Of a stretch of DNA of 64,000 nucleotides, positions 3,805 to 34,203 are shown one piece after another (within the stretch, counting starts at the first letter, position 1; every line of letters begins with the position of its first letter). The position numbers were made by a program, and so were the translations under genes. Under the pieces are notes generated by a model. That model worked only from the letters and a program-made list of their open reading frames with translations, was not told where the DNA came from and made no database searches. The DNA is from Bugula neritina (Eukaryota > Animalia > Bryozoa), in assembly GCA_964035545.1 (NCBI GenBank), contig OZ037773.1:1455751-1519750 (forward strand). Reading direction: 5' to 3'.

Positions 3805-4312
3805 CACTGTGTATAGTCTATACTCTATACTGTATACAGTCTATACTCTGCACTGTATACAGTCTATACTCTGCACTGTCTGCAGTCTATACTCTGCACT
3901 GTATACAGTCTGTACTGTATACACTCTATACTCTGCACTGTATGCAGTCTATACTCTGCACTGTATACAGTCTATACTCTGCACTGTATATAGTCTATAC
4001 TCTGCACTGTATATAGTCTATACTCTGTACTGTATATAGTCTATACTCTGCACTGTGTACAGTCTATACTCTGCACTGTATATAGTCTATACTCTGTACT
4101 GTATGCAGTCTATACTCTGTACTGTATATAGTCTATACTCTGTACTGTATATAGTCTATACTCTGTACTGTATATAGTCTATACTCTGTACTGTATATAG
4201 TCTATACTCTGTACTGTATATAGTCTATACTCTGCACTGTATATAGTCTATACTCTGCACTGTATATAGTCTGTACTCTGTATTGTATATAGTCTGTACT
4301 CTGTACTGTATA
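3805..4312. repeat. 23-bp tandem repeat CTATACTCTGCACTGTATATAGT (left edge of segmental duplication copy 1)
   Basis: Directly visible; the same array recurs at 24120-24731. Confidence 0.9.
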
Positions 4313-5660: not shown

Positions 5661-5773
5661 TTATTTTCAGCCAATCAACAAAAGGCTAATAATATAAGGA
5701 GCCAATGAGAATAAATTATTGTTGTATAAATTGAAAGCAGAGTGACCTCAATTCTCATGCAGCAGTGAGCTTC
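5661..5773 (+). promoter_or_regulatory. Putative core promoter of G1: two CCAAT boxes plus TATAAA
   Basis: GCCAATCA at 5670, GCCAATGA at 5701 and TATAAA at 5725, about 100 nt before the ATG. This block is deleted in the paralog G3. Confidence 0.6.
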
Positions 5774-5825
5774 ATTTAACTGAAAGTGTATCTCATCTCC
5801 AGACAAGAAAATCTGTCCCTCCATC

Positions 5826-7355: not shown

Positions 7356-8960
7356 AGTTCTCCATGTTATCCAGCTAAGGATGAACATCAAATACTGACT
7401 CTACTGAGGCTGAAATGATGTATATGATGTCTATAGAGTGTATTCTATTTAGTTTCTTGTATTCAACCGTGACAATTATTTGTGTATTCAATCTACTTTG
7501 TATTTTTTTTTCATTATTTTTAATTAATTTCTTTATATAATAAACACTTCATATTTCAACAATGTTCATACTAGAAGGTGTTGGGTAAAACCCAGAGCAA
7601 TTTACTTTCAAGATGTATGTCCAGCATAAATAATTCCAGTCATGTGTTCATTATTCTGTGAAGTTGTCCTCTTGTAAAATATTTGAATGTTCCAGAGAAC
7701 ATACTCTGAAGTTGAAGTGTAGCCCTTCAAAAATCATATTTTTGAGTGAGGTTGCCTTATCATATTAGCTGCAGGTAATGTGACATAGGTGGGGTTGTGT
7801 TGAGTGTTGGCGTTTCTATGTTAAGGGTGGGCAGTAACTGATAACATTGTTGCTTGTTTTGGAAGATACAACATCTAGCACTGGAGCAGCTATAGTTGAA
7901 TAGATTTTGTTCAAATGTGTTGGGAGAACCTAAAAAATATCTTACTGTCGTGCTGGTACAACACTTCCATCACATAGCTAAGATGGCTTTTGATATTCAA
8001 GTAGTTTTACAAGTGAACTAGCAGTGGATTAGTGCAACCCCCATAAGATCACTTGGTAATTGTTCAACTAAATTGTCTGACCTGCAGCTTCATCTAAGAA
8101 GAGAGGACAACCTAAAAGTATTGGATGATATAATGGCTATGGTCTACTAATACTAAGTAGTACCAGCACAGTCGTGCTTAGTTTGCTGGAGTTGTGGTTA
8201 GCGGACTAAAATAGACATAGCTCTATTAATTGTCTGTTTAATCACATTGGGCTGTGAATTCCTTATGCCCTTAATATATTTTCTAATTGGAACGTTTTTT
8301 GCTGCCTTGTGAAGCCATTATGTTTAAAATACTTAATGGAAATTGTTTATTCTAAACTATTTTAGCCCAGTGTGAATTAAAATCAAAAATTTCATTTTCT
8401 CAATATTTTACTAAATAAATCATTTATATGCTGGTGCAGCAAGTTTGTTTGAAGTGCTGTACTAGCGAAACTGAATTGTGACAAATTTCGACCAAACATC
8501 GGTGTCTTTTCATTTAATAAAGCAGTTCAGAAAGGAAACCAAACTCCAAATAGTCAATAAAATATATAAGCTATATTAAATTACGTGTAGATGCTAGTAT
8601 AGTATACAATCAACTGAATATTAAGTGTGCTATGTATATGTAATTGAAACTTATAAGCTTTATACAATATTTTGTGACTGCAGTATTATATTGATTTGCA
8701 TTAGGATGCTGTATATGGCCAGTATAAGTTGAAAATCATGTGCTATGTGGGACAGGCTAAACTTAAGAATACACATGTATATTTTACTAAAACTGAGTTC
8801 CATCTGAGATATGAAGTGAGAGCAACTATTCTTGATCATAAAATCTCCATACATAGCTTATTATTTTTGGTCCACAAACTTTTTAAATTGAACCGATTTC
8901 TTTAAAAAAGAAGCCACGCAAAATTCATTACTACAGATTATTTATGATACGCTCAATCGT

Positions 8961-9268
8961 ATATATTATACACTCAGTAGAATATATTACACACTCAGTA
9001 GAATATATTATACACTAAGTAGAATATATTACACACTCAGTAGTATATATTACACACTCAGTAGTATATATTACACACTCAGTAGAATATATTACACACT
9101 CAGTAGAATATATTACACACTTAGTAGAATATATTACACACTCAGTAGTATATATTACACACTCAGTAGAATATATTACACACTCAGTAGTATATATTAC
9201 ACACTCAGTAGAATATATTACACACTCAGTAGTATATATTACACACTCAGTAGTATATATTACACACT
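8961..9268. repeat. 21-bp tandem repeat TATATTACACACTCAGTAGAA
   Basis: Directly visible; shorter array in copy 2 (~29014-29130). Confidence 0.85.
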
Positions 9269-9680
9269 GAGTGCAGTTTCTCTGTAAGCTAAAGGAAATT
9301 GGGCTGTGGAGTTTTGATCATGCAAATGCACAAAACTATTTTGTTTTCTGTTTTTGTATAGCAGTATCTGATATTACATTGTATTTGTATAAAAAATAGA
9401 ATACACTATTTTGTGTTGTGTTGACTATTAGCAAGTCTTTATATGCATAAACATGAAAAACAGTCTATATATGGTAACAATTGAGCTTATATTATTAATT
9501 ATCTGGCAAAAAGAGGTAATAAGGAGAAATTTACTATCTAAATTCAAATGACTATTTTTGACAAATCAAACAAATTTTGTTAAACAAGACAAGAAAGCTA
9601 GCTGTAGCTATATAGAATATGAAAATATTATGAATACTTATTGCAGCAAGCTAAAGTTGCAAAGTAATACCAGCACCATT

Positions 9681-10005
9681 CAGTAGCTGTCAGTAACTGT
9701 CAGTAGCTTACAGTAGCTGTCAATAGCTTACAGTAGCTGTCAGTAGCTGTCGCTAGCTGTCAGTAGCTGTCAGTACTTGTCAATACTTGTCAATACTTGT
9801 CAATAGCTTTCAGTAGCTGTCAGTAGCTGTCAGTACCTGTCAGTAGCTGTCAATACTTGTCAGTACCTGTCAGTAGCTGTCACTAGCTGTCAGCAGCTGT
9901 CAGTAGCTGTCAGTACTTGTCAATACTTGTCAATAGCTGTCAGTGGCTGTCAGTAGCTTACAGTAGCTGTCAATAGCTGTCAGTGGCTGTCGATGGCTGT
10001 CAGCT
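9681..10005. repeat. 10-bp tandem repeat CAGTAGCTGT
   Basis: Directly visible; shorter array in copy 2 (~29543-29718). Confidence 0.85.
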
Positions 10006-11574
10006 ATGATGAATAAAGAGAAAAACTTATATTTCTTGGATATAATTATGTAGACGTTGAAGCCACATGATTATCCTCCATGTTTTTTGATAATTTATCC
10101 TATGATATGGTATAATGCACATTGTGTTTTATTACGGGTATTATACCGTATTACACAATATAGATTGTATAGTGATATTGTAACTTGCTGCGCATAGCTC
10201 CACCTCTACGCACTTTTCTCCTCCTGGTACATTCACAGCAGCAATGTAGATATGATTGCAGCACCTACAATAAATACACATCTTTATCAACTTACAGTTT
10301 TCTGGTTTTAATACATTATACGACTCCACTCGGGAAGGAAATGAATGTTTTGGCAGAAATAAGTGAAGTTTATTTTTTGACCAGTAAGCAAAGTAGGACT
10401 GGTTCTGATATAAAGAATATTTGACAGTTACTAATGCATTACAGATCAATACAATATACTTGTATTACTATAATATAGTCAAATATGACGTCATATAAAC
10501 ATGACAGGTTGCTATAGTTACTTACCAGCTAGTAGAGGGAAAGTGAGAGAGAGACCAGAAGCACTGTTACATCCGTCGCCATCAGTGCAAGAACATGACC
10601 AGCGCTTTACCAAACCTCCAGTAGCCACATTTATTTCCTGAAAGTTATCTTTGTACGAGCACTCGGAGTTGTTGTACCGGACTCCACAGATTCTGTTAAC
10701 TAGTAGGAAGCAAATTTTTCTACTGAAGCATCATGTGAAACTTTTTAGAGAATATCTATAAGTGCAGCTTTGACTGAACCTGAAGGTTGTTACGGAATAT
10801 GAATACATAAAACTGATAATTAACGCCTAGCTGTGGCAATGATAAAATCTGCTCTGTATTTATATGCCATAATTGTGCAGTTATGGCAGAGCCCAAGTTG
10901 ATGCTAGTTTTATAATTTATGACAATATTAAAAAAAAAGTAAATCTCGCATTTGCAGAAAGGAAGTACTGCAGGTTTAAAGTATTTTGTTTGGCAGCTTG
11001 ACCATAATTTATGTGCGTGCGTGTGTGTAACGGCCAGCATGGCCCTTTTGCAACACATTCTGTTGGTGCAAATATATAAAAACCCAAGTATTAAAAAGGC
11101 ATCCACAAACTGTCCATGCTTAACTTGTCAACCTTATTCTCATTAAATTTTAGTCATATTTGTTTTCCATAGCATTAGCATAATCAGTTTTTAACTAGCC
11201 ATATAAATACTTGTAAGCTGCACATCATGCTTTGTTCTAGACTTGGCCTAGCCATGGTAGGTCAAGTGCTAGAGCCATGACTAGTGCAGCCGTTTTATAG
11301 AACTAGTAGAGCCAATCAGGTAATACAGTTATGTTTAATGATTACTAATATCTTTACATTTTAATAGAAAATGAAATCTTAATTGTTTTACGATGATTTG
11401 GTGACTTCTTATACTACACCTTTGCATATTTTTACTAACATGTTGTTTTATACATTACTATTATGGTTTTCACGTTGCCTTATGGCATCAGTCAAGACTT
11501 ACGGCTCCAATAAAGTACCATCAACACCATAACATATAAACGGCTGCTACAGTGCGTGCGCGCGTGGGTGTTGC

Positions 11575-11672
11575 TAAGAGGAATATGAAATGGGATTAAT
11601 CAATTTGAGTTCCTGGCAACAGACGGCTGACAACAGAGTTGCATGGAGAGCTGCAACCAAATTTAAGCCAAA
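11575..11672 (+). mobile_element. Short RTE-like LINE C-terminal relic (also at ~31317-31412)
   Basis: Translates (frameshifted) KRNMK..INLSSWQQTADNRVAWRAAT, like the RTE W..A.DR..WR motif also seen at 23610-23660. Confidence 0.45.
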
Positions 11673-11683
11673 TTCCCCCCCCC

Positions 11684-11922
<239 letters not shown>

Positions 11923-12667
11923 ATATAAATTTGATAACAAGCTATTGTATATTGCATAATGCAACAAAATTGTCTAAATAGGATTAAAAAGAGTTGGTGA
12001 TAATTTCCCCAAACATATTATATCATAACGTATTACCATATACCTGAGGATACAGTTATCCCACCAACTGAAATTGTTGCTTTTCTCTTGGAACATCCTG
12101 TGTCTTCGGTAGAACAGTTGGTGAGATGGGTTTCTGGCATCATATATTCATCGTCACATTCTGGTTCGGCAAAACACGTATAGCAGTCCAACGCATGACT
12201 TGCAGTGGATATACCTATCAGTATTGAAATAGGAGACATGATACTACATCTATAAGTGTCACATACTTATCATCACATGTCACATACACACCATCATATG
12301 TCACACAGTTTTCATTACATGCCATATACCTTTTGTCACATGTCACATACTTTTCACTGTGCGTCATGTAAACCATTTATCACATGTCACACACCTTTCG
12401 TCATGTGCCACAATTATACTTGTGACCACGTGTCACATATTATATATACTATACTATAACATAGTATATATAAGCAAATAGTATAGTATATACTATAATA
12501 TAGTATATATAAGCATATAGTATAGTATATACTATATACTGTACTATAGTATATAGTATAGCATATAATATTATCTTATATACTACACTATATGCTATAT
12601 TATATATACTACATACTATAGTATAGTATATAGTATAATATACTATACTATATGCTGTACTATAGTT

Positions 12668-13047
12668 TATCACCTTGCCAGCGGATGGCTGAGATTTGAA
12701 TTTCTTCTTTCTCGGTGAGTCTGCATGTCGCCATTCCATTGACCTTCTTTTGCTTTCTGGCTCATAATAATGAACCCAAGTTTCGTCACCAGTGATAATC
12801 CTTTGCAAAAATGTCTCATCTTCTGCATGCATGCTGAGAAGCTCACAACCATCCTCCTTTTACGAGGCAGGAATACATGCTCTCATAAAACGATGGACAG
12901 CAGCTGTGGACAATAGAGGAGACTATATTGAGAAATAAAGTGTGTTCCTAAGTTGTTGCTGATCATTTTGATATATAGTTTAAGTATTCAGAAAATTTAA
13001 AAATTCTCTGATCTTACACAACAGGCGTTACTTTTTGAACCACCCTC

Positions 13048-13050
<3 letters not shown>
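12668..13050. mobile_element. Mariner (Tc1/mariner) relic with internal inversion
   Basis: Minus strand 12670-12847 encodes FLQRIITGDETWVHYYEPESKRRSMEW...KKKFKSQPSAGKV (first catalytic D). Plus strand 12843-12938 encodes the transposase C-terminus SQPSSFYEAGIHALIKRWTAAVDNRGDYIEK*. 3' TIR GGCGTTACTTTTTGAACCACCCTCG followed by TA. Confidence 0.85.

Positions 13051-13098
<48 letters not shown>
13049..13098. repeat. (TA)n tract, left boundary of the rDNA block
   Basis: Directly visible. Confidence 0.95.
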
Positions 13099-13100
<2 letters not shown>

Positions 13101-13189
13101 GTAGTGTGTTCAGATTGTTAATGATACATATATATTTTTTTATTTAAAAAATCTCACACGACTATATAGTTTCGTACAGTAAACTGCAC

Positions 13190-14325
13190 TCGTCGTTGCC
13201 CTACTCTGTCGTCGCCGCGCACCCGTCGTCGCGCGCGCTACCGTCGCCGCGCACCCGCCGTCGTCGTCGTCGTTGCCCTACTCTGTCGTCGCCGCGCACC
13301 CGTCGTCGCGCGCGCTACCGTCGCCGTCGACCGGTCGTCATCGTCGTTGCCCTACTCTGTCGTCGCCGCGCACCCGTCGTCGTCGCCGTCGCCTTACTCT
13401 GTCGTCGCCGTCGCCTTACTCTGTCGTCGCCGCGCACCCGTCATCGTCGTCGTTGCCCTACTCTGTCGTCGCCGCGCACCCGTCGTCGTCCTCGTTGCCC
13501 TACTCTGTCGTCGCCGCGCACCCGTCGTCGTCCTCGTTGCCCTACGCTGTCGTCGCCGCGCACCCGTCGTCAACGTCGTTGCTCTACTCGGTCGTCGCCG
13601 TGCACCCGTCGTCGCGCGCTACCGTCGTTGTCGTCGTCGCCGTCGTCGTCGCCTTACTCTGTCGTTGTCGTCGTCGCGCGCGCTCTGACGCGCGCTCTCT
13701 GCCAGTCGTCGACGTCGCTCTACTCTGTCGTCGCCGTCGCGTCGTCGTCGTCGTCGTCGCGCGCGCTGCCGTCGACCGGTCGTCCTCGCCGTTGCCTTAC
13801 TCTGTCGTCGCCGCGTCCTCGTCGTCGCGCGCGCTACCGTCGCCGTCGACCGGTCGTCGTCGCCGTACTCTGTCTGCGCCGCGTCGTCGCTGTCGCGTGC
13901 GCTACCGTCGCCGTCGACCGGTCGTCATCGTCGCCATCGCCTCACTCTGTCGTCGCGCGCGCTCCGACGCGCGCTCTCTGCCAGTCGTCGTCGTTACTCG
14001 TGCGCCGTCAAGACCGTGCCGCCCTCCAAAAAACACGGACTCCCGTGCCCGATGCGTCTTTTTTCTTTTTTCCACTTTTTCATTTTTTTACTTTTTATTT
14101 TCTTTCTGTTTTCCTCTCTTGTTTCTCTCTCTCCTCTCCATCTAGAAACGCGTGAGGCTGCGCCGGCCTACTGCATTTTCGGACTGACTCGATCGTCGGC
14201 GTCAAAAGGTCTCACGCATTGCACGCCGCGCGAACGCGACGCACGCCACCGCCCCAAACGTCTTCTACTTGCCTCCCTAGGTGAACAATCCGGCGGGGGC
14301 GTCAACACGGCTGACGTTTGCTCGC
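13190..14325 (-). repeat. GC-rich subrepeat array (~40-45 bp units GTCGTTGCCCTACTCTGTCGTCGCCGCGCACCC) plus spacer; probable rDNA 3'ETS/IGS
   Basis: Lies immediately downstream of the 28S 3' end on minus, with the same GC/CpG-rich composition as the rDNA. The subrepeat structure is typical of intergenic spacers (inference). Confidence 0.6.
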
Positions 14326-14749
14326 ACGAACTTTCGGCCGGGCGCTGAGTCTCAACAGATCGCAGTGTGGGGGCTGCTCTACTGAGTACGACACGCCGGC
14401 CGCAATCTAGGTCGTTTACGGATGGTTCCGCACTTTCACACTGATGGGTCGATAGTCGACCTCGAACGCCGGCTGGGCCGTAGCCGCGCCGGCCAGCAGT
14501 CAACGTACATGGCCTGAGCCACCGCGCGCAGAACGCACGATTATCGCTGCCTCCCAGCAGCAAGAGCACGCTACGGAGTATCATCACCGATCTTCCGTTG
14601 GGACGGTTTCTGACTTAGAGGCGTTCAGCCATTAGCCGCCAGATGGTAGCATCACACCATTGATCGGATCGAACAAGCATATGAACCAATTGTCTGAACC
14701 TGCGGTTCCTCTCGTACTAGGCAGGATTACCAGCGTAATGACTTGTGTA

Positions 14750-14784
<35 letters not shown>

Positions 14785-14846
14785 GAACCCAGCTCACGTT
14801 CCCTATTAGTGGGTGAACAATCCAACCCTTGGCGAATTCTGCTTCG

Positions 14847-14884
<38 letters not shown>

Positions 14885-14907
14885 AACGTCGCTATGAACG
14901 CTTGGCT

Positions 14908-14949
<42 letters not shown>

Positions 14950-15347
14950 ACGCCCCAAGCTCTGGGCAGTCGTAAGGATCGATAGGCCCCGCTTTCGCGG
15001 TCTGTATTCGTACTGGAAATCAAAATCAAGTGAGCTTTTGCCTTTTTGCTCTACGCGAGGTTTCTGTCCTCGCTGAGCTCACCTTAGGACACCTCCGTTA
15101 CCTTTTGACAGATGTACCGCCCCAGTCAAACTCCCCGCCTGACACTGTCTTCAGAGCGGATCGCCGTCCCGACACTCGTGGTGCCGCCTCGGCTTACAAC
15201 ACCAGAACGCCGAGCGGGCCGAGGCCCGCTCGCCTTCCGTCTAACTGAATAAGTAAAGAAACTACGGAAGTAGTGGTATTTCATTGCCGACGCCGCGAGG
15301 ACGCCTCCCACCTATGCTACACCTTTCGTGTCTCTTCACAATGTCAA

Positions 15348-15384
<37 letters not shown>

Positions 15385-15391
15385 GTATTTG

Positions 15392-15441
<50 letters not shown>

Positions 15442-15449
15442 TGGGAACA

Positions 15450-15486
<37 letters not shown>

Positions 15487-15500
15487 AAGGCATTTAGCTA
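14326..15500 (-). rRNA. 28S rRNA, 3' part downstream of the R2 site (orphan/pseudogenic copy)
   Basis: Conserved LSU blocks, e.g. plus-strand GCCAGTTATCCCTGTGGTAACTTTTCTGACACC and sarcin-ricin region GGTTCCTCTCGTACT. 3' end ...GCGATCTGTTGAGACTCAGC. Begins TAGCTAAATGCCTTGTCATCTAATTAG. Confidence 0.95.
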
Positions 15501-17762
15501 TTTTTTTTTTTTTTTTTTAAACGCTTGTCTTTCCTCTATCCGAGGGAAGTTAACAGGTTCATTAAGCCATTTTTGATGGTAACCCATGGCTGAGGGGCTA
15601 AATTAATAAGGGGATTTATACCGTCCTGTCTTTCAGGTAAAATGACTGAAAAATCTTAGAAAAATGTTCAACAATGAAAGCTATCCTACAAGTCAACCTC
15701 TTCGATTTCGTTCAACGTTACCGTCCACTTATACCACATATCATATATGTAAACTCCGTACTGCATTGTCTTCAATGACAGTATTGGAAGTTCCCTCACA
15801 CTTAAGAAATCTTTACAAAATTTCACGCTTCTCTTAGATATTGCACCTCTCTAGTTGATTATAAGTCCTCCTATTGAAACCTTCTCTTTCTGGCTTACTT
15901 CTCTTGCGTATTTCCTAACCTTCTCCACGTTGTACTTGTTTACCTTTCCATTATAGGGTACTTCCAGAGCCACATGATCGGAGACGATTGCTATGTCCAG
16001 CACTTTCACCTCTTCCGAGGCTTCGTGCCAGTACACTAAGTCTGGTTTGAGTAACCCTGACGCGTCCCTGATATGTGGCTCCGAAAGCACCCCATACCCT
16101 TGCTTTTCCAACCTTTTACATATGTATTCAACTACGGTGTTATGTCTGTGTACCCGTGGTTCATGTGATCTTGGGCAAGTTTGTAGAATGTGACCTAGCG
16201 TATGTGGGGTATTAACACATACTGGGCAATACGCTGAAACACTTTTGTTAATTCTGTTCCTTAACGTGTTGGTAACTAATGTTTTGTACCTTAGATGGTT
16301 AATTCTGATATAGTCTCTTCCTGTTAATATTCTAGTCGGCTCTCTTGTCCATCTGTGAGCTTGAGGTACTTTATCGTGTTTCGCTAGTCCTTTTCCATCG
16401 ACCGCTTCTATCAACTTTGCTTTCCATATGTTCTCCTCCTCTTTTTTACCCCCTATGCTTTTTCCCAAAATCCTGGGCGGCGCTAGCTCTTTCACATCAA
16501 TGACTGCATCGACTAGCGTGTCCTCATAACCTGACAACCTAACAACTCTCTCAAATCTCAACCTCCTGATTGTATATCTAAATGATGGTATTCCTAACCC
16601 TCCTGTGCTAACTGGTGCATAGAAATTTGCACTAGCAAAATGAGCATGCACCTTAAGCCATTTCTTGCATTCTGATCGCACTATGTAGTCTAGATGCGTC
16701 AGCACTTTTCCTGTGGGAGGCGATAAAATGAGTGCATGATAAAATTTTGGTATTACAAAAGATCTTAATAAAAATAACCTTTGCTGAGGCTTGAGGGGTG
16801 CTTTTGACAGCTTCTTTACTGCTGACTCCAAGCTCTTTGCAGGGTTGGTCCCTAGATTCACCGAACCTATCTGTACACCAAGATACTTGTAAGTGTCTAC
16901 GACACTTAACGCAGGCACCTTAGCGCCAGCCAACTCTAGAAATGGTCTGTCATCACACACCCACTTGCCCCGCAAAACCCTAGTGTTTAACGTTGCACAT
17001 TTGGCCGGATTGGCTTTCAAACCGGCCAAAGAGAATTGCTTTGTCACCAGATCACAATTTACCCGCAACCCGGCACTGTCCTCGCTCAGGATGACTAAGT
17101 CATCTGCAAAAGCCAAAAACTGGATCTTCTCTTCTCCCAACGTGTACCCAATATCTTTTCTAAGCTTATCTGTGCAGTAGTCTACGACAGCGTTGAACAG
17201 ATGCACTGACATCGGATCCCCCTGCTTTATCCCTCTCCTAGATCTAATCGGCTGTGACAATTTTTCATCCAAAACAATTCTGGTACTGCTATTCTTATAG
17301 AAATTATGGCAGTACTTTATGAAATGCTCTGGCACTCCGAGTTTTCTGCAGGAGGTCCACATTGCATCGTGCCCAACGCTGTCGAAGGCCTTCCTTAGAT
17401 CAATAAATGCTACTCTTAGGTTCTTCCCTTTCATTTTCGCTTCCGTAATACATCTCTGTAGGATTAGAGCGTTCAGGAATATCCCATCTCCCTTACGGAA
17501 GCCTTTCTGCCTCTGCGAGATAGGCAAGAGTTTCTCTAGCCTATTTCCCAGAATGCTGTGGAGCAGCCTAGTGAACACCGAACACACAGCAATGGGTCGA
17601 TACTCACTAGGGTCTTTTGTCCCCACAACCTTCGGAACCAGAGTAGTTCTTCCTTCACATATCATCGTTGGTAATCTTCCACACAGGAGCCATAAATTAA
17701 AGAATGAGGCTAGTTCCTCAGCCTTGATGTAATTCTTCAGTCTTTTCCAAGTGTATCCGTCT
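15501..17762 (-). mobile_element. R2 non-LTR retrotransposon, 5'-truncated, inserted at the canonical 28S R2 site
   Basis: Poly(A) (T-run 15501-15518) abuts TAGC(T)AAATGCC. ORF has RT motifs (YRPIAV, QKGFRKGDG, GIKQGDPMS, FADD), CCHC knuckle CPVC..HILQTC, RHN and KPDLV..D restriction-like endonuclease. The 5' end is cut at the (P)DG motif. Confidence 0.97.
15686..17762 (-). pseudogene. R2 RT-RLE open reading frame, N-terminally truncated, one premature stop
   Basis: The 604-aa ORF 15851-17665 extends upstream to the junction (DGYTWKRLKNYIKAEELASFFNLWLLCGRLPT). TAG at 15851-15853 falls in IIN*RGA (expected W); the frame continues to TAG at 15686-15688. Confidence 0.9.
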
Positions 17763-17763
17763 G

Positions 17764-18897
17764 TTTACCTGCGCTTGGTTAAATTTCTTCACTTTGACAT
17801 TCAAAGCACTGGGCAGAAATCACATCGCGGCAACACCGACCAGCGGCCATCGCGATGCTTTGTTTTAATTAGACAGTGGTGTTCCCAGAGTCCGCGCCAG
17901 TTCTGTGCCGTGCGTTTAGGCCGAACGAAGCCGACGCCGGCCCGCGAGAGCCGACGCCGGCGAAAGCCACGCCCGTCCACGGAGGCACGCCGGCGGCGGT
18001 CCAAACGCGCGCGAGCGCGTCCAGTCCAACCGACGCGCGCTCCGCTTCTTGACGCGACCCGAAGCAGCCCGCGCCTCAGAGCCAATCCTTATTCCGAAGT
18101 TACGGATCGGATTTGCCGACTTCCCTTACCTACATTGTTCTATCGACCAGAGGCTGTTCACCTTGGAGACCTGCTGCGGATTTGCGTACGGCCTAGAGTG
18201 AAAATCACACTGCCTCCCTCGGATTTTCAAGGGCCAACGCCGATGCACCGGACGCCGCGTGAGGCGCGACGCTTTACGGATGCAACGTCCCTATCTCTGG
18301 ACAAGCCAATTCCAGGGAGTCCGCTCCTAACAAAGAAAAGAGAACTCTTCCCGGGATCGACGCTGGCGTCTCCGAGTTCGGTTGCGTTACCGCACTGGGG
18401 CCCGAGGGCCCAATCTCCACCACCAGGTTCGGGAATATTAACCCGATTCCCTTTCGATCGGTTCGAGGCTAGCAAGGTCGTTCGCCCTCGTTCTGCGGCC
18501 GCGCGTCGGCTCTGCCACCCTTTAAATGATACAGAAATCTGTGCAACGTCTTTTTCAAAGCCCAGATAGGGTTGGCCGCTCACGTCAGACGGCTCGCAAC
18601 GAACGCCTCCTCCCCGTTCAGAACGGAGTTCTCCGATCTCTTAGGCCCGACTGACCCATGTCCAACTGCTGTTCACATGGAATCCTTCTCCACTTCGGTC
18701 TACAAAATTCTCATTTGTATACTTGCTACTACCACCAAGATCTGCACTGAAGGCGGCTCCACGCGTGCCCTCGCACAACGCTTCTGCGCCACCGACACGC
18801 CCTCCTACTCATCGGGGCCTGGCATTACGCAGGCATTGCCCCGACGGTGCGGTATGGGTCGCACGCTTCAGCGCCATCCATTTTCAGGGCTAGTTGA

Positions 18898-18930
<33 letters not shown>

Positions 18931-19216
18931 AATTCCGACTTCCATGGCCATCGTCCTGCTGTCTATATCAACCAACACCTTTTGTGGTGTCTCATGAGCG
19001 TGCGTTAGGCACCCTAACCGCACGTTTGGTTCATCCCACAGCGCCAGTTCTGCTTACCAAAAACGGCCCACTGGGCACTCTCTGTTCGAGCACGCGACCC
19101 CGATAGGGAAGGGTCGCGCCTCTTACCCATTTAAAGTTTGAGAATAGGTTGAGGACGTTTCGTCCCCAATGCCTCTAATCATTCGCTTTACCGGATAAAA
19201 CCATACGAATCGAGTG

Positions 19217-19258
<42 letters not shown>

Positions 19259-20030
19259 GCGGTTCGATTAGTCTTTCGCCCCTATGCTCAAGTTTGACGA
19301 CCGATTTGCACGTCAGGATCGCTGCGAGCCTCCACCAGAGTTTCCTCTGGCTTCGCCCTGCTCAAGCATAGTTCGCCACCTTTCGGGTCTGAGCACGCCC
19401 GCTTTCGCGCCGTAGCCACTCGCGTCGAGTCGGCCGCGGGCTGGCATTGCGCCGACACGCCAGTGCCGGATCACGCCCATTTTGCCTTAGCTTCGCCTTC
19501 GGGGTTCGTCGAGCCCATCGACTCGCGAGCGTGCTCAACTCCTTGGTCCGTGTTTCAAGACGGGTCGGACGGAGTGCCGGGAACCACGCGACTCGGACCC
19601 TGGACGACGCGCGACGCCGCGCGCTCCGACTGCAGTTCGCCACCGGGGTCCGCCAGCTAGCCGCGTCGAGTCGCTCCCGCTCGCCTTGGAAGACGAGGGG
19701 AGTGCGTCGCAGACGCTCCTCGCCCGTCGAGTCGGCCGACGCCGCTCCGGCCTGTAACACGGCGCGCGGGAGCGCGTCGCTACTTTGCCGCCGGGCTTCT
19801 CGCGACTCGTCAGGCGGTCGCCGCGCTCCGCCGCCGCCAAGTGCACTGTCGCGCGGCGGCGACGGCTAAATGGCGGCGGCGAACTTTGCCCGGTTTCGTC
19901 CGTTTGCCTCTAAACAGTTTCACAGACTCTTGAACTCTCTTTTCAAAGTTCTTTGCAACTTTCCCTCACGGTACTTGTTTGCTATCGGTTTCGCACTAGG
20001 TATTTAGCCTTAGATGGAGGTTACCACCAC
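17764..20030 (-). rRNA. 28S rRNA, 5'/central part (first ~300 nt missing)
   Basis: Conserved blocks, e.g. plus-strand CCAGCTATCCTGAGGGAAACTTCGG, GGTCCGTGTTTCAAGACGGG and TTCCCTCACGGTACTTGTT. Homology stops at TTAGATGGAGGTTACCACC, ~20 nt from 5.8S. Confidence 0.95.
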
Positions 20031-20048
20031 GCGGTTGTCAGCGAATGA

Positions 20049-20203
20049 CGACCCTCAGACAGGCGCGGCCATGGGATGACCCGGGGCCACAATGTGCGTT
20101 CAAGATGCCGATGATCGATGTGTCCTGCAGTTCACATTGCATAACGCAGCTGGCTGCGCTCTTCATCGACGTGCGAGCCGAGTGATCCACCGCTCAGAGT
20201 TGT
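20049..20203 (-). rRNA. 5.8S rRNA
   Basis: AACTCTGAGCGGTGGATCACTCGGCTCGCACGTCGATGAAGAGCGCAGC...TTGAACGCACATTG...CGCCTGTCTGAGGGTCG on minus. Confidence 0.95.
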
Positions 20204-20438
20204 CCCTTGCACAGTCGGGGCTGTGCCTCTGAGGTTTGCGTCGACCCGCGCGCTCGCCCTGGCAGGGGCGGCGGTGCGGGCCCTCGCTCTACGCGCGGCC
20301 AGAGAGAGAGCGAGAGGCGGCGGCCCCCGCCCGGCTACGCGCGCACAATTGCAACGGAGCGAACGTGCGACGCGGCGCGCCCCCGCGGGAGAGGACACCG
20401 CGCGCACGCCGCCGGTGCGCCGATCGCGGCGCGCGCGC

Positions 20439-21568
20439 TATCTGGTTGATCCTGCCAGTAATCATATGCTTGTCTCAAAGATTAAGCCATGCATGTCTAA
20501 GTACAAGCCGCGTACGCGGCAAGACTGCGGACCAGACTCATCCGTGGATAACGTGCGGTAACTCCGGTGCTAATACATGCACCAAGGCTCCGACCCCGTC
20601 CTCGGGCGGAGGAAGGGCGCACTTATTAGACGAAAACCAATGGCCCGGCCTCGCGCCGAGCGTTGGTGGACGACACCCGAGTAATTGCCGCCGATCGCAC
20701 GGCCTCGGCGCCGGCGACGCCTTCACTGAGTTTCTGATCTATCATGCTGTCGACGGTTGGTGCTATGCCAACCGTGGCGTTGACGGATAACAGAGAATCT
20801 GGGTTCGATTCTGGAGAGGCCGCATGAGAAACGGCGACCACTTCCAAGGAAGGCAGCAGGCACGCAAATTACCCACTTCGGACACAGAGAGGTAGTGACG
20901 AACAATACCGATGCGGCGCACTTACGTGTCGCCGTAATCGGAATGAGTACACTTCAAATCCTTTAACGAGGATCCACTTGAGGGCAAGCCTGGTGCCAGC
21001 AGCCGCGGTAATTCCAGCTCAAGCAGCGTATATTTATATTGCTGCGTTTAAAAAGCTCGTAGTTGAAACGTCAGACGCGGGAGGGCGGACGGCCGTACCG
21101 GTCGCACTCGCCCGACCGAGCCAGGCGCGGATGGCGCGCGTCGCTTGCACTTTGCCGTGTGAGCGCGCCGCCGCTGCACGTTCACCTTGAAGAAATTGAA
21201 CCGCTTAGAGGGGGCGAGCAGCTTGAACAGCTCAGCATGGTATGGTGGAACATGGGCTCGTACTCATTTTGTTGGTTAGAGAGTCGGCGAGCCAATGATT
21301 AACACGGACTGCCGGGGGCATTAGTACTCGGACGGGAGAGGTGAAATTCAAGGATCGTCCGAAGACTCCCTACTGCGAAAGCATTTGCCAAGAATGTTTT
21401 CATTAATCAAGAACGAAAGTCAGAGGTGCGAAGGCGATCAGATACCGCCGTAGTTCTGACCGTAAACGTTGCCGCCTGGCAATTGGGCGCACTTCTGTTG
21501 AAGTTGCCGCCAGCAGTATTGCCCGGGAAACCAAAGTCATTGGGTTCCGGGGGGAGTATGGTTGCAAA

Positions 21569-21617
<49 letters not shown>

Positions 21618-22055
21618 GCGGCTTAATTTGACTCAACACGGGAAACCTCACCCGGCCCGAACACTGTTATGACAGACAGGTTGAGAGCTCTTTCTCGATT
21701 CAGTGGTTGGTGGTGCATGGCCGTTCTTAGTTCGTGGAGCGATTTGTCTAGTTAATTCCGATAACGAACGAGATTCTTGCCTGCTAAATAGACGGCGCCG
21801 CCTCAGCACGGCGACCGATCGCTTCTTAGAGGGACAAGCGGCTTTTAGCCGCGTGAAGCAGAGAGCAATAACAGGTCAGTGATGCCCTCAGATCTTCGGG
21901 GCCGCACGCGCGCTACACTGTTTGCATCAGCGTGTTTCTCCCGCGCCGACGGGCGCGGGCAACCCGTTGAACCGCAAACGTGCTAGGGATCGGAGATTGC
22001 AATTGTTCTCCGTCAACGAAGAATTCCTTGTACTGGCGAGTCATCAGCTCGCGGG

Positions 22056-22059
<4 letters not shown>
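20439..22059 (+). rRNA. 18S rRNA, inverted relative to 5.8S/28S, 3'-truncated, with a small 5' internal deletion
   Basis: Starts TATCTGGTTGATCCTGCCAGT and contains GTGCCAGCAGCCGCGGTAATTCC and AAACTTAAAGGAATTGACGG. Stops before the universal ACGTCCCTGCCCTTTGTACACACCGCCC. Lacks GGCTCATTAAATCAG near 20530. Confidence 0.95.

Positions 22060-22106
<47 letters not shown>
22058..22106. repeat. (TA)n tract between 18S and RTE
   Basis: Directly visible. Confidence 0.95.
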
Positions 22107-24098
<1,992 letters not shown>

Positions 24099-26225
24099 TA
24101 TTTCCTATTAGCACTGAACCACTGTATATAGTATATACTGTGTGCTGTATATACAGTCTATACTCTGTACTGTACACAGTCTATACTCTGCACTGTATAC
24201 AGTCTATACTCTGTACTGTATACAGTCTATACTCTGTACTGTATATAGTCTATACTCTGCACTGTATATAGTCTATACTCTGCACTGTATACAGTCTATA
24301 CTCTGCACTGTATATAGTCTATACTCTGCACTGTATACAGTCTATACTCTGTACTGTATACAGTCTATACTCTGCACTGTATACAGTCTATACTCTGTAC
24401 TGTATACAGTCTATACTCTGCACTGTATATAGTCTATACTCTGCACTGTATACAGTCTATACTCTGCACTGTATATAGTCTATACTCTGCACTGTATGCA
24501 GTCTATACTCTGCACTCTATATAGTCTATACTCTGCACTGTATACAGTCTATACTCTGCACTGTATATAGTCTATACTCTGCACTGTATACAGTCTATAC
24601 TCTGTACTCTATATAGTCTATACTCTGCACTGTATACAGTCTGTACTCTGTACTGTATATAGTCTACACTCTGTACTGTATCTAGTCTATACTCTGCACT
24701 GTATATATTCTATACTCTGCACTGTATATAGTAAATACTTTGCTCTGTATAATTACACAGGTTATACTGAATTGCAATATCTGACAACGAATTGATACGG
24801 TTTCATACATTTGATGGCTGTATGCATTCATTAATTAGGGAGTTATAACTTAACCTTAAATACAAACAAGTAAATAGTAAATAAAAACAGATTAAAACAC
24901 TACAACATTATTCAGTACATACAAGTTGTGTTGTTCTTGAAATCAGATTTTGACTAAGCTAAATTACACATAGGGTGGGGAGTTGGGGCCGCCAAATTAA
25001 GCTGCAATTCAGTGAGCACACCTTTTTGAGTTTCCAGTTCACTATTTTACCTTTCTGCAATTTAATTGTTTTACTTTCTGTGGTGATATAAAGTTCTTTT
25101 TTCACTACAAAGCCGAAGATGTAGCTATTGAAACAATAGCCTGTAGATGAGCAGTACATTTATTTTCTGCTGACAACTTGTGTGTAGTGGTAGGAGTGGT
25201 GGTAGGACTTTCACATATTTGTACAACATGCAAGGAAATCTGTGCCCCACAGGTGGTACTATACTAGCTGCCTTAGAATCATCACAGGTGCAGGTACAAA
25301 CAAGGCATGACAAACACTGCTTCTACCTCTGCTGCTACTGCTATGGTAGGTACTGAATACAAGGTAGGTAGTGTATACAAGGTAGGTACTGTATACAAGG
25401 TAGGTACTGTATACATAGTAGGTACTGTATACAAGGTAGGTAGTGTATACAAGGTAGGTACTGAATACAAGGTAGGTGCTGTATACATAGTAAGTACTGT
25501 ATATAAGGTAGGTACTGTATACATGGTGGGTATTGTGGATTTTGTCACTTTGTAGATGACTTTGAATAAACGTGAAATAGTAATATTTTAAGGTTAACCT
25601 TCTCTCTACTTGTCATAACTACAGCGTAGTTGTATGACTGAATGAAATGAATACACATACTGACTACTCAGGATAGGGAGGGAATAAGAAGGTTAATAAC
25701 TGACTTCAAATACAGCTCAACAGGAACTCAAACCCACTTGTGTTCTGCATTCTGCTCTAATAAACTTTGAATAACAAATCAAATAAGTAATATATGTTAT
25801 TTGCTATCCACTAACAAATTTATTCACAGTACGTATGGCAGTACAAGCATAGCAACTTTATCAAGAAATCTCTTGTTATAATATATGCAATCAACTACAT
25901 TAGTTTCACAGCATCTAATATAAAACTGTTTTTGGTGATTGAAGTTCTAAAGAAAGAAAACCCTTTTTTATGTTGATATGGAATCTTTTTTTGCTTCTTA
26001 AATTTAACTCTTAACCAGTACTAACTGGGACAGGGGAAGTTATAGCTGACACCCTCACATAATGGTATACATCATCATGAAATAAGGCTACACTAAAGCT
26101 TTTTCATAGCTATTTTTGGCTTTGACGGTATCAACTACTTAGCTCCCATATATGGTATGATTTTCTATTATTCATTTAACTGAAAGTGTATCTCATCTCC
26201 AGACAAGAAAATCTGTCCCTCCATC

Positions 26226-27414
26226 ATGAACTCTTATGTATTTGTTGCTTTGTTCTTCCTTGGTAAGTTCAGTTTTAATTATTTATTAAATAAAATGTTA
26301 GTTTATAATTAGTGTTACCAAAAACATATAGAGTGTTTAATTGATGCCTGGGTGTGTAAAATCTCTAACAAGTTTCTATGAAAACATATCTCTTTTTAAA
26401 ATATATAATTAGAAGAAATAATGTTGGTACCAATTTTGTGAGGGTTTCTGTTCTTTGAAAAAGGAAACTATGCTATTTACTATTTTAGCTGTGAAGTGTG
26501 GACAAGTCAATTTGACTTGAGTGAATTACTCTAGATCATCTTTTACACTTGAGCATTTGTAGTTGTTGCTTTCCATTTGCTAAACCTACTCCTAGTATAA
26601 GTAGTAGTTACTGTTTTCACAAAAATGTGCGCTTTACAATTCAAAATTCAAATTAAAACTTGCCATAATATATAACTACTTGTTAAACTGCTTTTGCATG
26701 TCAAAACTTTTTTTTCAAAACTTGAACATTTTTCTATGTATGAACAAGTTAAATAGAAAAAATAAAATTACTGAAACCGACTGGCTAAGCTAGAGTTGTG
26801 CTCTCCGTAGGTGCTGTGGCTGTTAGCAGTGGACTACAGTGCTACGTGTGTGATACAACTGATGACTCTACATGTGATGACATGTACGGCAAACCTGCTG
26901 GACACCTGCAAGACTGTCTCACCGACTCTCTTCTTGATGATGGCTGCTCCAAATTAAAATCCACAGGAAAAATTTTGGGAGCAAAATTGTCGACAAGTAA
27001 GTTCTCTTGGAATTACAAACTGCTGAACTTGTCAACAGACAACGCTCAAAAAAATTTCAATTTCAAAAATCTACACTTTTTGTTATTTTGAAGTCGTGAG
27101 AAGCTGTGGAAGTATTTATGACAACACCCAGTGTGCACAGAAAGACCGTGCTAAAGTAAATATTTTTGGCGTCAAAGGAGAAACCTGGTCATGTTCCTGC
27201 ACTGGAGAAGGATGCAACAGTGCATCTGGTCTCTCTCTCACTTTCCCTCTACTAGCTGGTAAGTAGCTATAGCAACCTAGCCATGTATTAGTAACATATG
27301 TAGGCGCTTCATTTTTATTTTAACATTTCGCTGCTTGTACCAGTTGGTTGATTTAATTAATCCACACTAATATATATTTACATTTTAGCTGTTCTGGCCA
27401 AGTACCTTATTTGA
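26226..27414 (+). CDS. G3: Ly6/Quiver-like protein, recent paralog of G1 (ORF intact, putative core promoter deleted)
   Basis: Exons 26226-26262, 26811-26996, 27094-27258, 27389-27414. Nine amino-acid differences from G1 by manual comparison; all 10 Cys retained. Confidence 0.85.
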
Positions 27415-29945
27415 AGTTCTCCATGTCATCCAGCTAAGGATGAACATCAAATACTGACTCTACTGAGGCTGAAATGATGTATATGATGTCTATAGAGTGT
27501 AATCTATTTAGTTTCTTGTATTCAACCGCGACAATTATTTGTGTACTCAATCTACTTTGTATTTTTTTTTCATTATTTTTAATTAATTTCTTTGTATAAT
27601 AAACACTTCATATTTCAACAATGTTCATACTAGAAGGTGTTGGGTAAAACCCAGAGCAATTTACTTTCAAAATGCATAAATAATTCCAGTCATGTGTTCA
27701 TTATTCTGTGAAGTTGTCCTCTTGCAAAATAGTTTAATGTTCCAGAGAACATACTCTGAAGGTGAAGTGTAGCCCTTCAAAAATCATATCTTTGAGTGAG
27801 GTTGCCTTATCATATTAGCTGCAGGTAATAAGTGACATAAGTGCGGTTATGTTGAGTGTTGGCGTTTCTATGTTAAGGGTGGGCAGTAACTGATAGCATT
27901 GTTGCTTGTTTAGGAAGATGCAACATCTAGCACTGGAGCAGCTATAGTTGAATAGATTTTGTTCAAATGTGTTGGGAGAACTTAAAAAATATCTTACTGT
28001 CGTGCTGGTACAACACTTCTATCACATAGCTAGGCTGGCTTTTGATATTCAAGTAGTTTTACAAGTAAACTAGCAGTGGATTAGTGCCACCCCTATAAGA
28101 TCACTGGTAATTGTTCAACTAAATTGTCTGGCATCCAGCTTCATCTAAGAAGAGTGGACAACCTAAAAGTATTGGATGAGATAATGGCTATGGTCTACTA
28201 ATACTAAGTAGTACCATCACAGTCGTGCTTAGTTTGCTGGAGTTGTGGTTAGCAGACTAAAATAGACATAGAGCTATTAATTGCCTGTTTTATCACATTG
28301 GGCTGTGAACTACTTATGCCCTCAATATTTTTTCTAATTGGGACGTTTTTGCTGCCTTGTGAAGCCATTCTGTTTAAGATACTCAATGAAAATTGGTTAC
28401 CCCAAACTGTTTTAGCTCAGTGTGAATTAAAATTTGGGAAAGTTTCTGCAATTCAAAAGTTTCATTTTCTCAATATTTTGCTAAATAAGTCATTTATATG
28501 CTGGTACAGCAAGTTTATTTGAACTGCTGTACCAGCAAAACTGAATTGTGACAAATTTCAACCAAACATTGTTGTCTTTTCATTTAATAGAGCAGTTCAG
28601 AAAGGAAACCAAACTCCAAATAATAAATAAAATATATAAGCTATATCAAAATACGTATAGATGCTAGTATAGTATACAATCAACTGAATATTAAGTGTGC
28701 TATGTATATGTAATTGAAACTTATAAGCTTTATACAATATTTTGTGACTGCAGTATTATATTGATTTGCATTAGGATGCTGTATATGACTAGTATAAATC
28801 ATGTGCTATGTGGGACAGGCTAAACTTAAGAATACACATGTATATTTTACTAAAACAGAGTTCCATCTGAGATATGAAGTGAGAGCAACTATTCTTGATC
28901 ACAAAATCTCCATACAGCTTATTATTTTTGGTCCACAAACTTTTTAAATTAAACCCATTTCTTTAAAAAAGAAGCCACGCAAAATTCACTACTACAGATG
29001 ATTTATGATACGGTATATATTATACACTCAGTAGAATATATTACACACTTAGTAGAATAGGTTACACATTCAGCAGTATATATTACACTCAGTAGAATAT
29101 GTTACACACTCAGTAGAATATATTAAACACCCAGTGCAGTTTCTCTGAAAGCTAAAGGAAATTAGGCTGTGGAGTTTTGATCATGCAATATTGCACAAAA
29201 CTATTTTGTTTTCTGTTTTTGTACTGCAGTATCTGATATTGTATTGTATTAGTATGAAAAATAGAATACACTATTTTGTGTTGTGTTGGCTATTAGCAAG
29301 TTTTTATATGCATAACAGTGAAAAACAGCTTATATATGGTAATAATTGAGCTTATTATCAATTATCTGGCAAAAAGAGTTAATAAGGAGAAATTTACTAT
29401 CTAAATTCAAATGACTATTTTTGACAAATCAAACAAATTTTGTTAAACAAGACAAGAAAGCTAGCTGTAGCTATATAGAATATGAAAATATTATGAATAC
29501 TTATTGCAGCAAGCTAAAGTTGCAAAGTAATACCAGCACCATTCAGTAGCTGTCAGTAACTGTCAGTAACTGTCAGTACCTGTCAGTAGCTGTCACTAGC
29601 TGTCAGCAGCTGTCAGTAGCTGTCAGTACTTGTCAATACTTGTCAATAGCTGTCAGTGGCTGTCAGTAGCTTACAGTAGCTGTCAATAGCTGTCAGTGGC
29701 TGTCGATGGCTGTCAGCTATGATGAATAAAGAGAAAAACTTATATTTCTTGGATATAATTATGTAGACGTTGAAGCCACATGATTATCCTACATGTTTTC
29801 TGATAATTTATCTTATTATATGGTATAATGCACATTGTGTTTTATTACGGGTATTATACCGTATTACACAATATAGATTGTATAGTGACATTGTAACTTG
29901 CTGCGCATAGCTCGATCTCTACACACTTTTCTCCTCCTGGTACAT

Positions 29946-34203
<4,258 letters not shown>

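Follow-up and report, generated by a model that had tools for sequence, protein, structure and literature searches.

A partly inverted, R2-bearing rDNA orphon beside a Ly6-like tandem duplication in Bugula neritina, probably captured at a DNA break

The window, by which we mean the whole 64-kb stretch of contig C9 that was analyzed, contains at 13190-22059 (1.47 Mb on the contig) a single 8.9-kb rDNA-derived block made of two arms arranged head-to-head. Genes were called with Rfam, tandem repeats with TRF, and breakpoints were mapped by blastn, with a canonical unit (C6:7138000-7156000) from the same 216-Mb genome as the reference. The minus arm comprises IGS, 28S, 5.8S, and 88 nt of ITS1, the plus arm consists of 150 nt of 5'ETS followed by 18S nt 1-1655, and the two meet at 20289. 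Opposed orientations, with 28S and 5.8S on the minus strand and 18S on the plus strand, had been proposed in the original prediction, and they are borne out by the Rfam calls (18S (+) from 20439; 5.8S (-) at 20049-20201; 28S (-) at 14328-20005) as well as by the breakpoint mapping. Rfam extends the 18S call to 22132, an end produced by forced global alignment; homology ends at 22059.

In the minus arm, the proximal 1.14 kb of the IGS (13190-14327), composed of 42-145-bp subrepeats according to TRF, aligns by blastn to the canonical IGS with 85% substitution identity, and its outer end falls within the subrepeat array, 1.14 kb beyond 28S. Then follow 28S nt 2621-3794 (14328-15500; Rfam; 99.2% identity to array units), an insert described below, and 28S nt 304-2592 (17757-20028; blastn; 97.5% substitution identity), where the differences concentrate in expansion segments and a private 27-bp deletion is present. 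The first 23 nt of ITS2 (20027-20048; blastn) are joined directly to 28S nt 304, a 683-bp deletion of ITS2 nt 24-403 and 28S nt 1-303 that agrees with the loss of ITS2 and the 5' part of 28S predicted from the sequence. The arm closes with the 5.8S copy (20049-20201; Rfam RF00002, 130.8 bits) and the last 87-88 nt of ITS1 (20202-20289; blastn), up to the inversion joint. In the plus arm, the 5'ETS from -195 to -1 (20289-20438; blastn) has lost 46 bp between 12-bp direct repeats, so that a hybrid ITS1/5'ETS spacer lies at 20202-20438, as had been described. The 18S (nt 1-1655 of 1850; 20439-22059; Rfam and blastn; 99.0% substitution identity) lacks its 3' 195 nt and a conserved block of 33 bp at nt 94-126, both losses having been anticipated, and its final AT overlaps the adjoining (AT)n tract. 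The arms share no sequence and together amount to one rDNA unit minus internal losses, the loss at the inversion joint being 2,036 bp, which covers most of ITS1 and the 3' part of 18S. The original prediction raised antisense rRNA as a possible product of transcription; since no sequence of the unit occurs in both orientations, a hairpin RNA cannot form.

The 28S insert is a 5'-truncated R2 retrotransposon of 2,256 bp (15501-17756, minus strand), identified from the Rfam insert, Pfam, and a match to R2Bm. Its 3' end carries a poly(A)18 at 15501-15518, next to which lie the 3'UTR and an open frame at 15851-17756 (~635 codons) that spans the RT, a CCHC knuckle, and a PD..D endonuclease, the motifs CPVC..H..C and KPD..D being read in the translation. 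All three regions resemble R2Bm, with a Pfam RVT_1 match at 1.2e-32 and a match to R2Bm 8gh6 at 5.6e-90 over residues 444-1031 of 1114. The Rfam alignment places the insert between LSU model positions ~2257 and ~2279, with the A-run followed by TAGCTAAATGCC. We take the R2 target in 28S to be between ...TTAAGG and TAGCCAAATGCC, and the copy lies at the canonical 28S R2 site, in sense orientation relative to 28S. At its 5' joint ~22 bp of the 28S target are deleted, the element picks up at around residue 440 of R2Bm, without the N-terminal zinc-finger/Myb DNA-binding region, and no Rfam match to an HDV-like ribozyme was obtained for the copy. Judging from these features, it is a dead, 5'-truncated member of the family, a state typical of R2 (PMC2718515). 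The precise 3' joint, the sense orientation, and the 5' truncation with a small upstream loss of 28S are all shared with truncated R2 copies in 28S genes of Drosophila and other animals (PMC2718515, PMC4370867). Nonetheless, the host 28S is here an orphan pseudogene instead of an array unit, and no relative of this lineage above 84% identity was found in the animal's own assembly, including at least 17 array units. Neither was any R2 found within these units, which are colinear. The element may have come with an array unit that already bore R2, or it may have been gained later.

The rDNA arrays of this genome lie on C6 and C135. The rRNA gene parts of the block show 97.5-99.2% substitution identity to array units (18S, 5.8S, and 28S), and the spacers are homologous too. 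The joint between ITS1 and 5'ETS occurs once in the genome, every array unit being split there in the alignment, and all assembled C6 and C135 units are colinear; the expectation that this arrangement is not the norm of the main array is thus confirmed. Moreover, the block carries private substitutions (16 in 18S, 57 in the 5' part of 28S, and 9 in the 3' part) and private deletions of 27, 33, 46, and 683 bp, whereas the array units are uniform. In conserved cores the substitutions amount to ~1%, and G/C-to-A/T changes are in excess in the 5' part of 28S. Such private changes, set against near-identical array units, indicate that the copy is not a misplaced array read.

These data bear on the idea of an assembly error, in which rDNA reads were wrongly joined to give the head-to-head structure or were placed on C9 by mistake. 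rDNA is difficult to assemble, and in the main array on C6 orientation flips occur where N-runs mark scaffold gaps. However, there is no N anywhere in the window, the private substitutions and deletions occur in both arms and are absent from all array units, and a fold-back chimeric read would repeat one sequence in opposite orientations, a pattern absent here. Also, the outer joints show microhomology and lie in unique flanks that are supported by a paralogue. An assembly artefact is therefore highly improbable. No allelic copy of the locus is present in the assembly.

The block is thus genuine: a dispersed and dead copy of the 45S rDNA unit of this animal, known in such cases as an rDNA orphon, which is an ordinary kind of genomic fossil. 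The pattern of changes shows a copy that is out of concerted evolution and undergoing pseudogene decay. In the canonical spacer, promoter-like CAACTATAGG repeats lie ~550-770 nt upstream of the 5'ETS breakpoint (the start site being estimated), and these repeats were not found in the window. The 18S is incomplete, and the 28S lacks its first 303 nt and is interrupted by R2. Without a promoter-like motif for Pol I, and with neither a complete rRNA gene nor a complete R2, the unit is from its sequence best regarded as non-functional.

The left border of the insertion is a (TA)25 tract (13049-13098; TRF and sequence), separated from the rDNA by a 96-bp fragment of an inverted-repeat, foldback-like element (13099-13194, plus strand; defined from genome copies). 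The original prediction had the rDNA begin at 13100, and this has to be corrected, positions 13100-13185 being a fragment of this transposon-like repeat. Over 13099-13185 the genome has at least 42 copies at 99-100% identity, as in a young, high-copy element; unlike the fragment, other copies run on past position 87 with GCACTCGTCAGG, and they make palindromes whose turn-round points vary. (TA)n directly adjoins other copies as well, and the left (TA)25 may be part of the element instead of a split resident microsatellite. On the right, an (AT)24.5 tract (22058-22106; TRF and sequence) is followed by a 5'-truncated LINE with an RT ORF (22107-23954, plus strand; RVT_1 at 2.6e-39 and genome copies), which shares 99% identity with at least 12 copies; these reach further 5' and end in GCTGACA without an A-tail. 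This LINE landed later in the same TA tract and is separate from the rDNA event. The rest of the resident tract is an (AT)69 at 23959-24096 (TRF), and the next tandem-duplication unit starts at 24102. (TA)n makes up only ~0.7% of the window, yet it adjoins both ends of the block.

The flanks consist of a Ly6-like tandem duplication and transposable elements; a Ly6 cluster had been proposed as the setting, and this holds at the level of motifs only. Self-alignment of the window matches 3785-12439 to 24120-32182 with 86-95% identity, and at the matching end of the paralogous ~20-kb duplication unit an uninterrupted (TA)112 is found (32307-32530; TRF and self-alignment). This tract is an approximate empty site, with 125 bp and 284 bp beside it that have no counterpart in copy 1. 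Since the paralogous unit has diverged by 5-14%, compared with ~1% for the rDNA decay, the duplication is older. The R2 element, the (TA)n and transposable-element context, and this paralogous site, none of which figured in the original prediction, provide the bulk of the evidence on mechanism.

The four novel joints show microhomologies of 5, 1, 2, and 2 nt. These are, respectively, the TCGTC common to the foldback-like repeat and the IGS (13190-13194), a C overlap at 20289 between ITS1 and 5'ETS, a GG at the ITS2-28S deletion, and an AT between 18S and (TA)n. Overlaps of 1-2 nt are at chance level, and TCGTC is frequent in the IGS, so that the 5-nt overlap gives modest support. Poly(A) is absent from the outer IGS joint, as had been stated. 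The claimed lack of a target-site duplication stands in a weaker form: with (TA)n on both sides and the 96-bp repeat fragment between the left tract and the rDNA, a duplication is undefinable, and (TA)n could hide one. The joints and the repeat filler match the pattern of capture at breaks, for which one expects 0-5 nt of microhomology at the joints, no target-site duplication, and possibly filler and several pieces.

The evidence as a whole makes it probable that a break in a fragile TA/palindrome site took up fragments of rDNA as DNA, with pseudogene decay following. This reading is favored by an IGS subrepeat end without poly(A), the lack of a definable target-site duplication, microhomologies of 1-5 nt, and a (TA)n site carrying a piece of palindrome-forming repeat, the (TA)112 of the paralogue being intact. 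We infer a double-strand break in a long (TA)n tract carrying the hairpin-prone inverted-repeat element, whose repair would have ligated or copied rDNA sequence in. The head-to-head form may have arisen by ligation of two rDNA fragments, or through one copying process that switched template and strand; one event or several may have been involved, and the 683-bp deletion could have occurred during the repair or afterwards. The private deletions of 27, 33, and 46 bp and the ~1% of core substitutions would have followed, and then the young LINE would have entered the TA tract. In yeast, rDNA has been documented among the sequences inserted at induced breaks (PMC11372161). Re-integrated extrachromosomal repeats have been proposed as a source of orphons (PMC3225859), and extrachromosomal rDNA was named in the original prediction as a possible donor here.

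Twin priming (as defined in PMC2837659) also predicts this geometry, with the 5' piece inverted and its 3'-most point outward. In such a case, the reverse transcriptase of a LINE or of R2 would use a nick in the TA tract to copy a read-through pre-rRNA (~10 kb) of an R2-bearing unit. Priming of one cDNA would take place in the IGS, and that of a second, on the opposite strand, at the internal position 18S nt 1655. The block indeed has two inverted fragments with the 5' one inverted (18S nt 1655 outer, 5'ETS -195 inner against ITS1 -87) and an internal loss, just as in L1 twin-priming inversions (PMC2837659). Also, both outer joints show microhomology, the genome contains active-looking LINEs and rRNA-LINE chimeras, and a truncated R2 without a ribozyme would remain within the 28S transcript. 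On the other hand, and at variance with the L1 cases, the 3' joint has no poly(A) and falls among IGS subrepeats, 1.14 kb beyond the end of 28S, no target-site duplication can be defined, and the repeat fragment intervenes on the left. The 2,036-nt loss exceeds what is typical at twin-priming junctions. Moreover, cDNAs of 8.1 kb and 1.8 kb from an unprocessed Pol I precursor would be needed, and the inverted piece ends ~550-770 nt short of the promoter-like motifs. Clear RNA-derived rRNA pieces elsewhere in the genome look unlike the C9 block, since they end at mature termini (one stops exactly at the mature 28S 3' end), which the block does not. For these reasons we consider twin priming very unlikely; if true, the enzyme of a LINE or of R2 would have carried the greater part of an rDNA unit, together with its spacers and an R2 as passenger, to another place in the chromosomes. 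The preference for DNA capture over twin priming expressed in the original prediction has the same direction as ours and is partly supported overall.

A stepwise DNA history could also be considered, in which a colinear fragment (5'ETS -195 to IGS +1.14 kb) entered the TA tract, the segment 5'ETS-18S-ITS1 was inverted later, and a 2,036-bp deletion followed. This would fit arms without overlap that add up to one unit minus internal losses, a locus that gathers later deletions (27-683 bp), and an older rDNA orphon on contig C2 that is colinear. However, it would take three independent events, when a single complex repair is enough. The junction alignments revealed no inverted repeats at either end of the inverted segment, and decay is similar in both arms, so that the events are not separable in time. 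We regard this sequence of events as unlikely.

Returning to capture at a break, the inserts known from yeast breaks are far smaller than the 8.9 kb of the block. The yeast Break-Ins literature describes double-strand breaks that took up rDNA, mtDNA, and retroelement DNA (PMC11372161; Yu et al. 2018, cited there). The donor is the same as here, with little or no homology at the joints and several pieces possibly joined per repair, whereas the present insert lies in an animal germ line and its break is inferred, not induced. Finally, rDNA orphons are described as dispersed copies of tandem rRNA genes in Xenopus and human (Childs et al. 1981, cited in PMC3225859). The C9 block is likewise single, outside the arrays, among low-copy and repetitive elements, free of homogenization, and decaying. 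It differs in being internally rearranged, with the 18S arm inverted, in bearing an R2, and in an insertion site that can be read to the base as a TA tract with a foldback-like repeat.

The block at 13190-22059 departs from a regular rDNA unit in orientation, continuity and completeness. As originally described, 18S lies on the plus strand (from 20439 in the Rfam annotation), against 5.8S (20049-20201) and 28S (14328-20005) on the minus strand. Breakpoints were mapped with blastn and MAFFT against a canonical unit taken from the main array (contig C6, C6:7138000-7156000) and annotated with Rfam, in a genome of 216 Mb and 321 contigs. This unit measures 13,342 nt and contains an 18S of 1,850 nt, an ITS1 of 1,928 nt, which is unusually long and occupies 3620-5547 of locus L011 (C6:7138000-7147999), a 5.8S of 153 nt, an ITS2 of 403 nt and a 28S of 3,794 nt, the 28S length being called short. 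In these terms, the minus-strand arm consists of the first 1.14 kb of the IGS subrepeats (13190-14327), 28S nt 2621-3794 (14328-15500), 28S nt 304-2592 (17757-20028) and the last 87-88 nt of ITS1 together with 5.8S and the first 23 nt of ITS2 (20027-20289), whereas the plus-strand arm (20289-22059) holds the 5′ETS from -195 followed by 18S nt 1-1655. The losses that had been noticed from the sequence are all found again, being 195 nt at the 18S 3′ end, 683 bp covering a portion of ITS2 and 28S nt 1-303, and 33 bp of a conserved 18S block (nt 94-126). Two further deletions are observed, one of 46 bp in the 5′ETS, flanked by 12-bp direct repeats, and another of 27 bp in a 28S expansion hairpin. 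The observation of a rearranged unit is confirmed and refined in this way. For annotation, a warning applies: Rfam reports a full-length 18S here, and its end at 22132 is due to a forced global alignment, as homology ends at 22059.

This arrangement is not the norm in the main array. When window positions 19900-20700 were searched against the complete genome, no second ITS1/5′ETS joint appeared, and the array units all split exactly at window position 20289. The assembled array units on contigs C6 and C135 (at least 17) are colinear and nearly identical to one another. The C6 array changes orientation and appears as two converging blocks (C6:7112929 and C6:7185826-7186027); since the flip and the left edge both fall on runs of N, corresponding to scaffold gaps, they carry no biological information and the array orientation in the assembly is unreliable. 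A breakpoint hotspot at 5′ETS -180 to -195 was dropped on the same grounds, because the C6 left edge (5′ETS -180) and the central flip adjoin the N runs. As for the block itself, an assembly artefact is highly improbable. The window contains no N, and each arm has private substitutions and deletions that none of the array units shows, so that neither arm is a misplaced array read; moreover, a fold-back chimeric read would give one sequence in both orientations, which is not seen.

The block probably arose by a DNA-level event. This reading is favored because short microhomologies are present at the four novel joints, being 5 nt at the TE/IGS joint (13190; TCGTC, common to the repeat fragment and the IGS), 2 nt at the 683-bp deletion (20028), 1 nt at the inversion (20289) and 2 nt at the 18S/TA tract joint (22059), and because the IGS end has no poly(A), no target-site duplication can be defined, and the insert includes spacers and has ends that coincide with no mature rRNA terminus. 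Also, the window lacks the CAACTATAGG-type promoter-like repeats, four of which are found in the canonical spacer (~770-1035 of locus L011, C6:7138000-7147999). Their layout resembles that of a gene promoter accompanied by spacer promoters, and by analogy with insect and plant promoters they are read as putative Pol I promoters. As they sit an estimated ~550-770 nt upstream of the 5′ETS breakpoint, position -195 was rejected as a transcription start, which would have favored a cDNA origin. The original prediction had preferred DNA-level capture to twin priming, and the joints and the missing poly(A) and target-site duplication broadly support this choice, although the most informative features had been overlooked. 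Twin priming (PMC2837659) would explain the geometry, but the 3′ end does not fit, no duplication of the target can be defined and an internal loss of 2,036 nt would be required, which makes it a rather improbable origin. A clearly RNA-derived fragment does exist elsewhere, at C2:23512636-23513097 (locus L039, 1037-1498); it comprises 28S nt 3332-3794 at 98.5% identity and stops precisely at the mature 28S 3′ terminus, after which comes unrelated T-rich sequence, as a template-switch chimera would show. The same contig also carries an older, colinear and heavily deleted rDNA orphon (C2:15827165-15828483; locus L040, 566-1884), 77-88% identical to the array unit, with 5′ETS, 18S pieces, ITS1, 5.8S and the start of ITS2.

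TA tracts and palindrome-forming repeats are fragile sequence classes, and the DNA-level event would have begun with a break within one or the other. During repair of this break, two rDNA fragments would have been united by end joining, or else rDNA would have been copied in while both template and strand were switched. A colinear insertion with subsequent inversion and deletion would be another form of the DNA-level reading, though an unlikely one, as more events are needed. In yeast, rDNA has been documented to serve as a donor at breaks that were induced (PMC11372161), and orphons have been suggested to derive from extrachromosomal repeats that re-integrated (PMC3225859).

TA tracts account for only ~0.7% of the window, yet they are present at both outer ends of the block, with (TA)25 at 13049-13098 on the left and (AT)24.5 at 22058-22106 on the right. 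The left tract is separated from the IGS by 96 bp (13099-13194) that belong to a young repeat family, of which at least 42 copies are 99-100% identical. Elsewhere, this family forms palindromes whose turn-round points vary and which often have (TA)n at their borders (for example, C8:4911296-4913061, C5:14019167-14019605 and C8:8412043-8412254); it may represent an element of the foldback type or result from rearrangement through hairpins. The interpretation of 13099-13185 as IGS or random filler was rejected, since it belongs to this high-copy repeat. Further left, a nonautonomous mariner derivative with terminal inverted repeats of ~206 bp, present in at least eight copies at 97-98% identity, contributes its right-hand 380 bp (12669-13048), which end at the (TA)25 tract; participation of this piece in the same rearrangement was rejected because the internal "inversion" corresponds to the long terminal inverted repeats, a feature of the family. 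On the right, (AT)24.5 is followed by a 5′-truncated LINE (22107-23954), which has no A-tail and shares 99% identity with at least 12 longer copies, then by (AT)69 and the start of the next tandem-duplication unit. This LINE is a later, independent insertion into the same TA tract. An 18S-LINE template-switch chimera was rejected because (TA)24 separates the two, TA tracts occur on both sides of the LINE, and the LINE is younger.

The block sits at the end of the first copy of a tandem duplication of ~20.3 kb, in which 3785-12439 pairs with 24120-32182 at 86-95% identity. The 5-14% divergence between the copies implies that the duplication predates the rDNA insert. At the matching end of the second copy, a single uninterrupted (TA)112 (32307-32530) is found, which corresponds to an empty site, only approximate because 125 bp and 284 bp flanking this tract have no counterpart in the first copy. 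No haplotig with an allelic empty site was found in the assembly. The duplication holds Ly6/QVR-like first exons (LxCYxC...GCSK) at 6774 and 26834 on the plus strand and at 12191 and 31924 on the minus strand, for which the Pfam QVR match is below the cut-off (E = 4.6e-4). Three more exons of this kind are located downstream, at 39777, 49122 and 51507.

The 28S is interrupted, in 28S-sense orientation, by an insert of 2,256 bp (15501-17756), which ends in 18 A followed directly by TAGCTAAATGCC, a position known as the canonical R2 insertion site. Its identity was settled by Pfam and PDB matches: the reading frame runs open from the 5′ joint up to its stop codon (~635 codons) and matches RVT_1 (1.2e-32) and the solved Bombyx R2 protein (8gh6; 5.6e-90, residues 444-1031 of 1114), and a CCHC motif and the PD..D endonuclease motif are legible in the translation. 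Based on this evidence, the insert is a 5′-truncated, dead R2 copy. At its 5′ joint, ~22 bp of upstream 28S are deleted, a pattern also described for Drosophila R2 (PMC2718515). No R2 is present in the assembled array units of C6 and C135. The nearest R2-like copies (C9:316804-318539, C9:1745812-1747336, C3:20012001-20013326 and C8:5175900-5180780) are 79-84% identical to the copy in the window, are located outside rDNA and have no 28S flanks that could be detected; a search of the array units for the same truncation variant found none. In one of these non-rDNA copies, an A-run and TAGC precede unrelated sequence. Being the only R2 in a genuine 28S target within the assembly, the copy in the window preserves an R2 lineage not seen in the assembled arrays.

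With no complete rRNA gene, no Pol I promoter-like motif and a truncated R2, the block would not be expected to have a function, judging from its sequence. Antisense rRNA could be produced only by read-through from neighboring genes, and since the unit contains no segment in two opposite orientations, its folding into a long hairpin RNA is not possible. In annotation, the 18S and 28S matches on contig C9 should be taken neither for functional rRNA genes nor for a second nucleolus organizer. The block is an rDNA orphon with a dead R2, of a known kind, well resolved and not surprising. Its value is that of a base-resolved example of orphon formation, with an rDNA donor, a recipient made of TA microsatellite and palindrome-forming repeat, microhomology joints and a paralogous near-empty site in the window. 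Moreover, the private deletions and joints provide unique markers for questions on orphan-rDNA transcription or small RNAs.

Finally, identity to the canonical unit, counting substitutions only, is 99.0% for 18S, 99.2% for the 3′ part of 28S, 98.5% for the ITS1 end with 5.8S, 97.5% for the 5′ part of 28S, 93% for the 5′ETS and 85% for the IGS. The conserved cores suggest a decay of ~1%. Two capture dates for the 28S halves (99.2% versus 97.5%, Fisher p = 2e-4) were rejected because the excess in the 5′ part lies in expansion segments, with zero differences in nt 971-1476; the difference reflects where rDNA varies and not the date of capture. In this 5′ part, changes from G/C to A/T outnumber the reverse by 33 to 7, with half at CpG, and the observed/expected ratio of CpG is 0.35 in the flanking DNA, both consistent with a methylated, decaying pseudogene. 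Also, the 28S flanking the R2 (15481-15500 and 17757-17769) contains four transitions in ~35 bp, three of them at CpG, a density much above that of the rest of the copy, which may be due to methylation spreading from the element.
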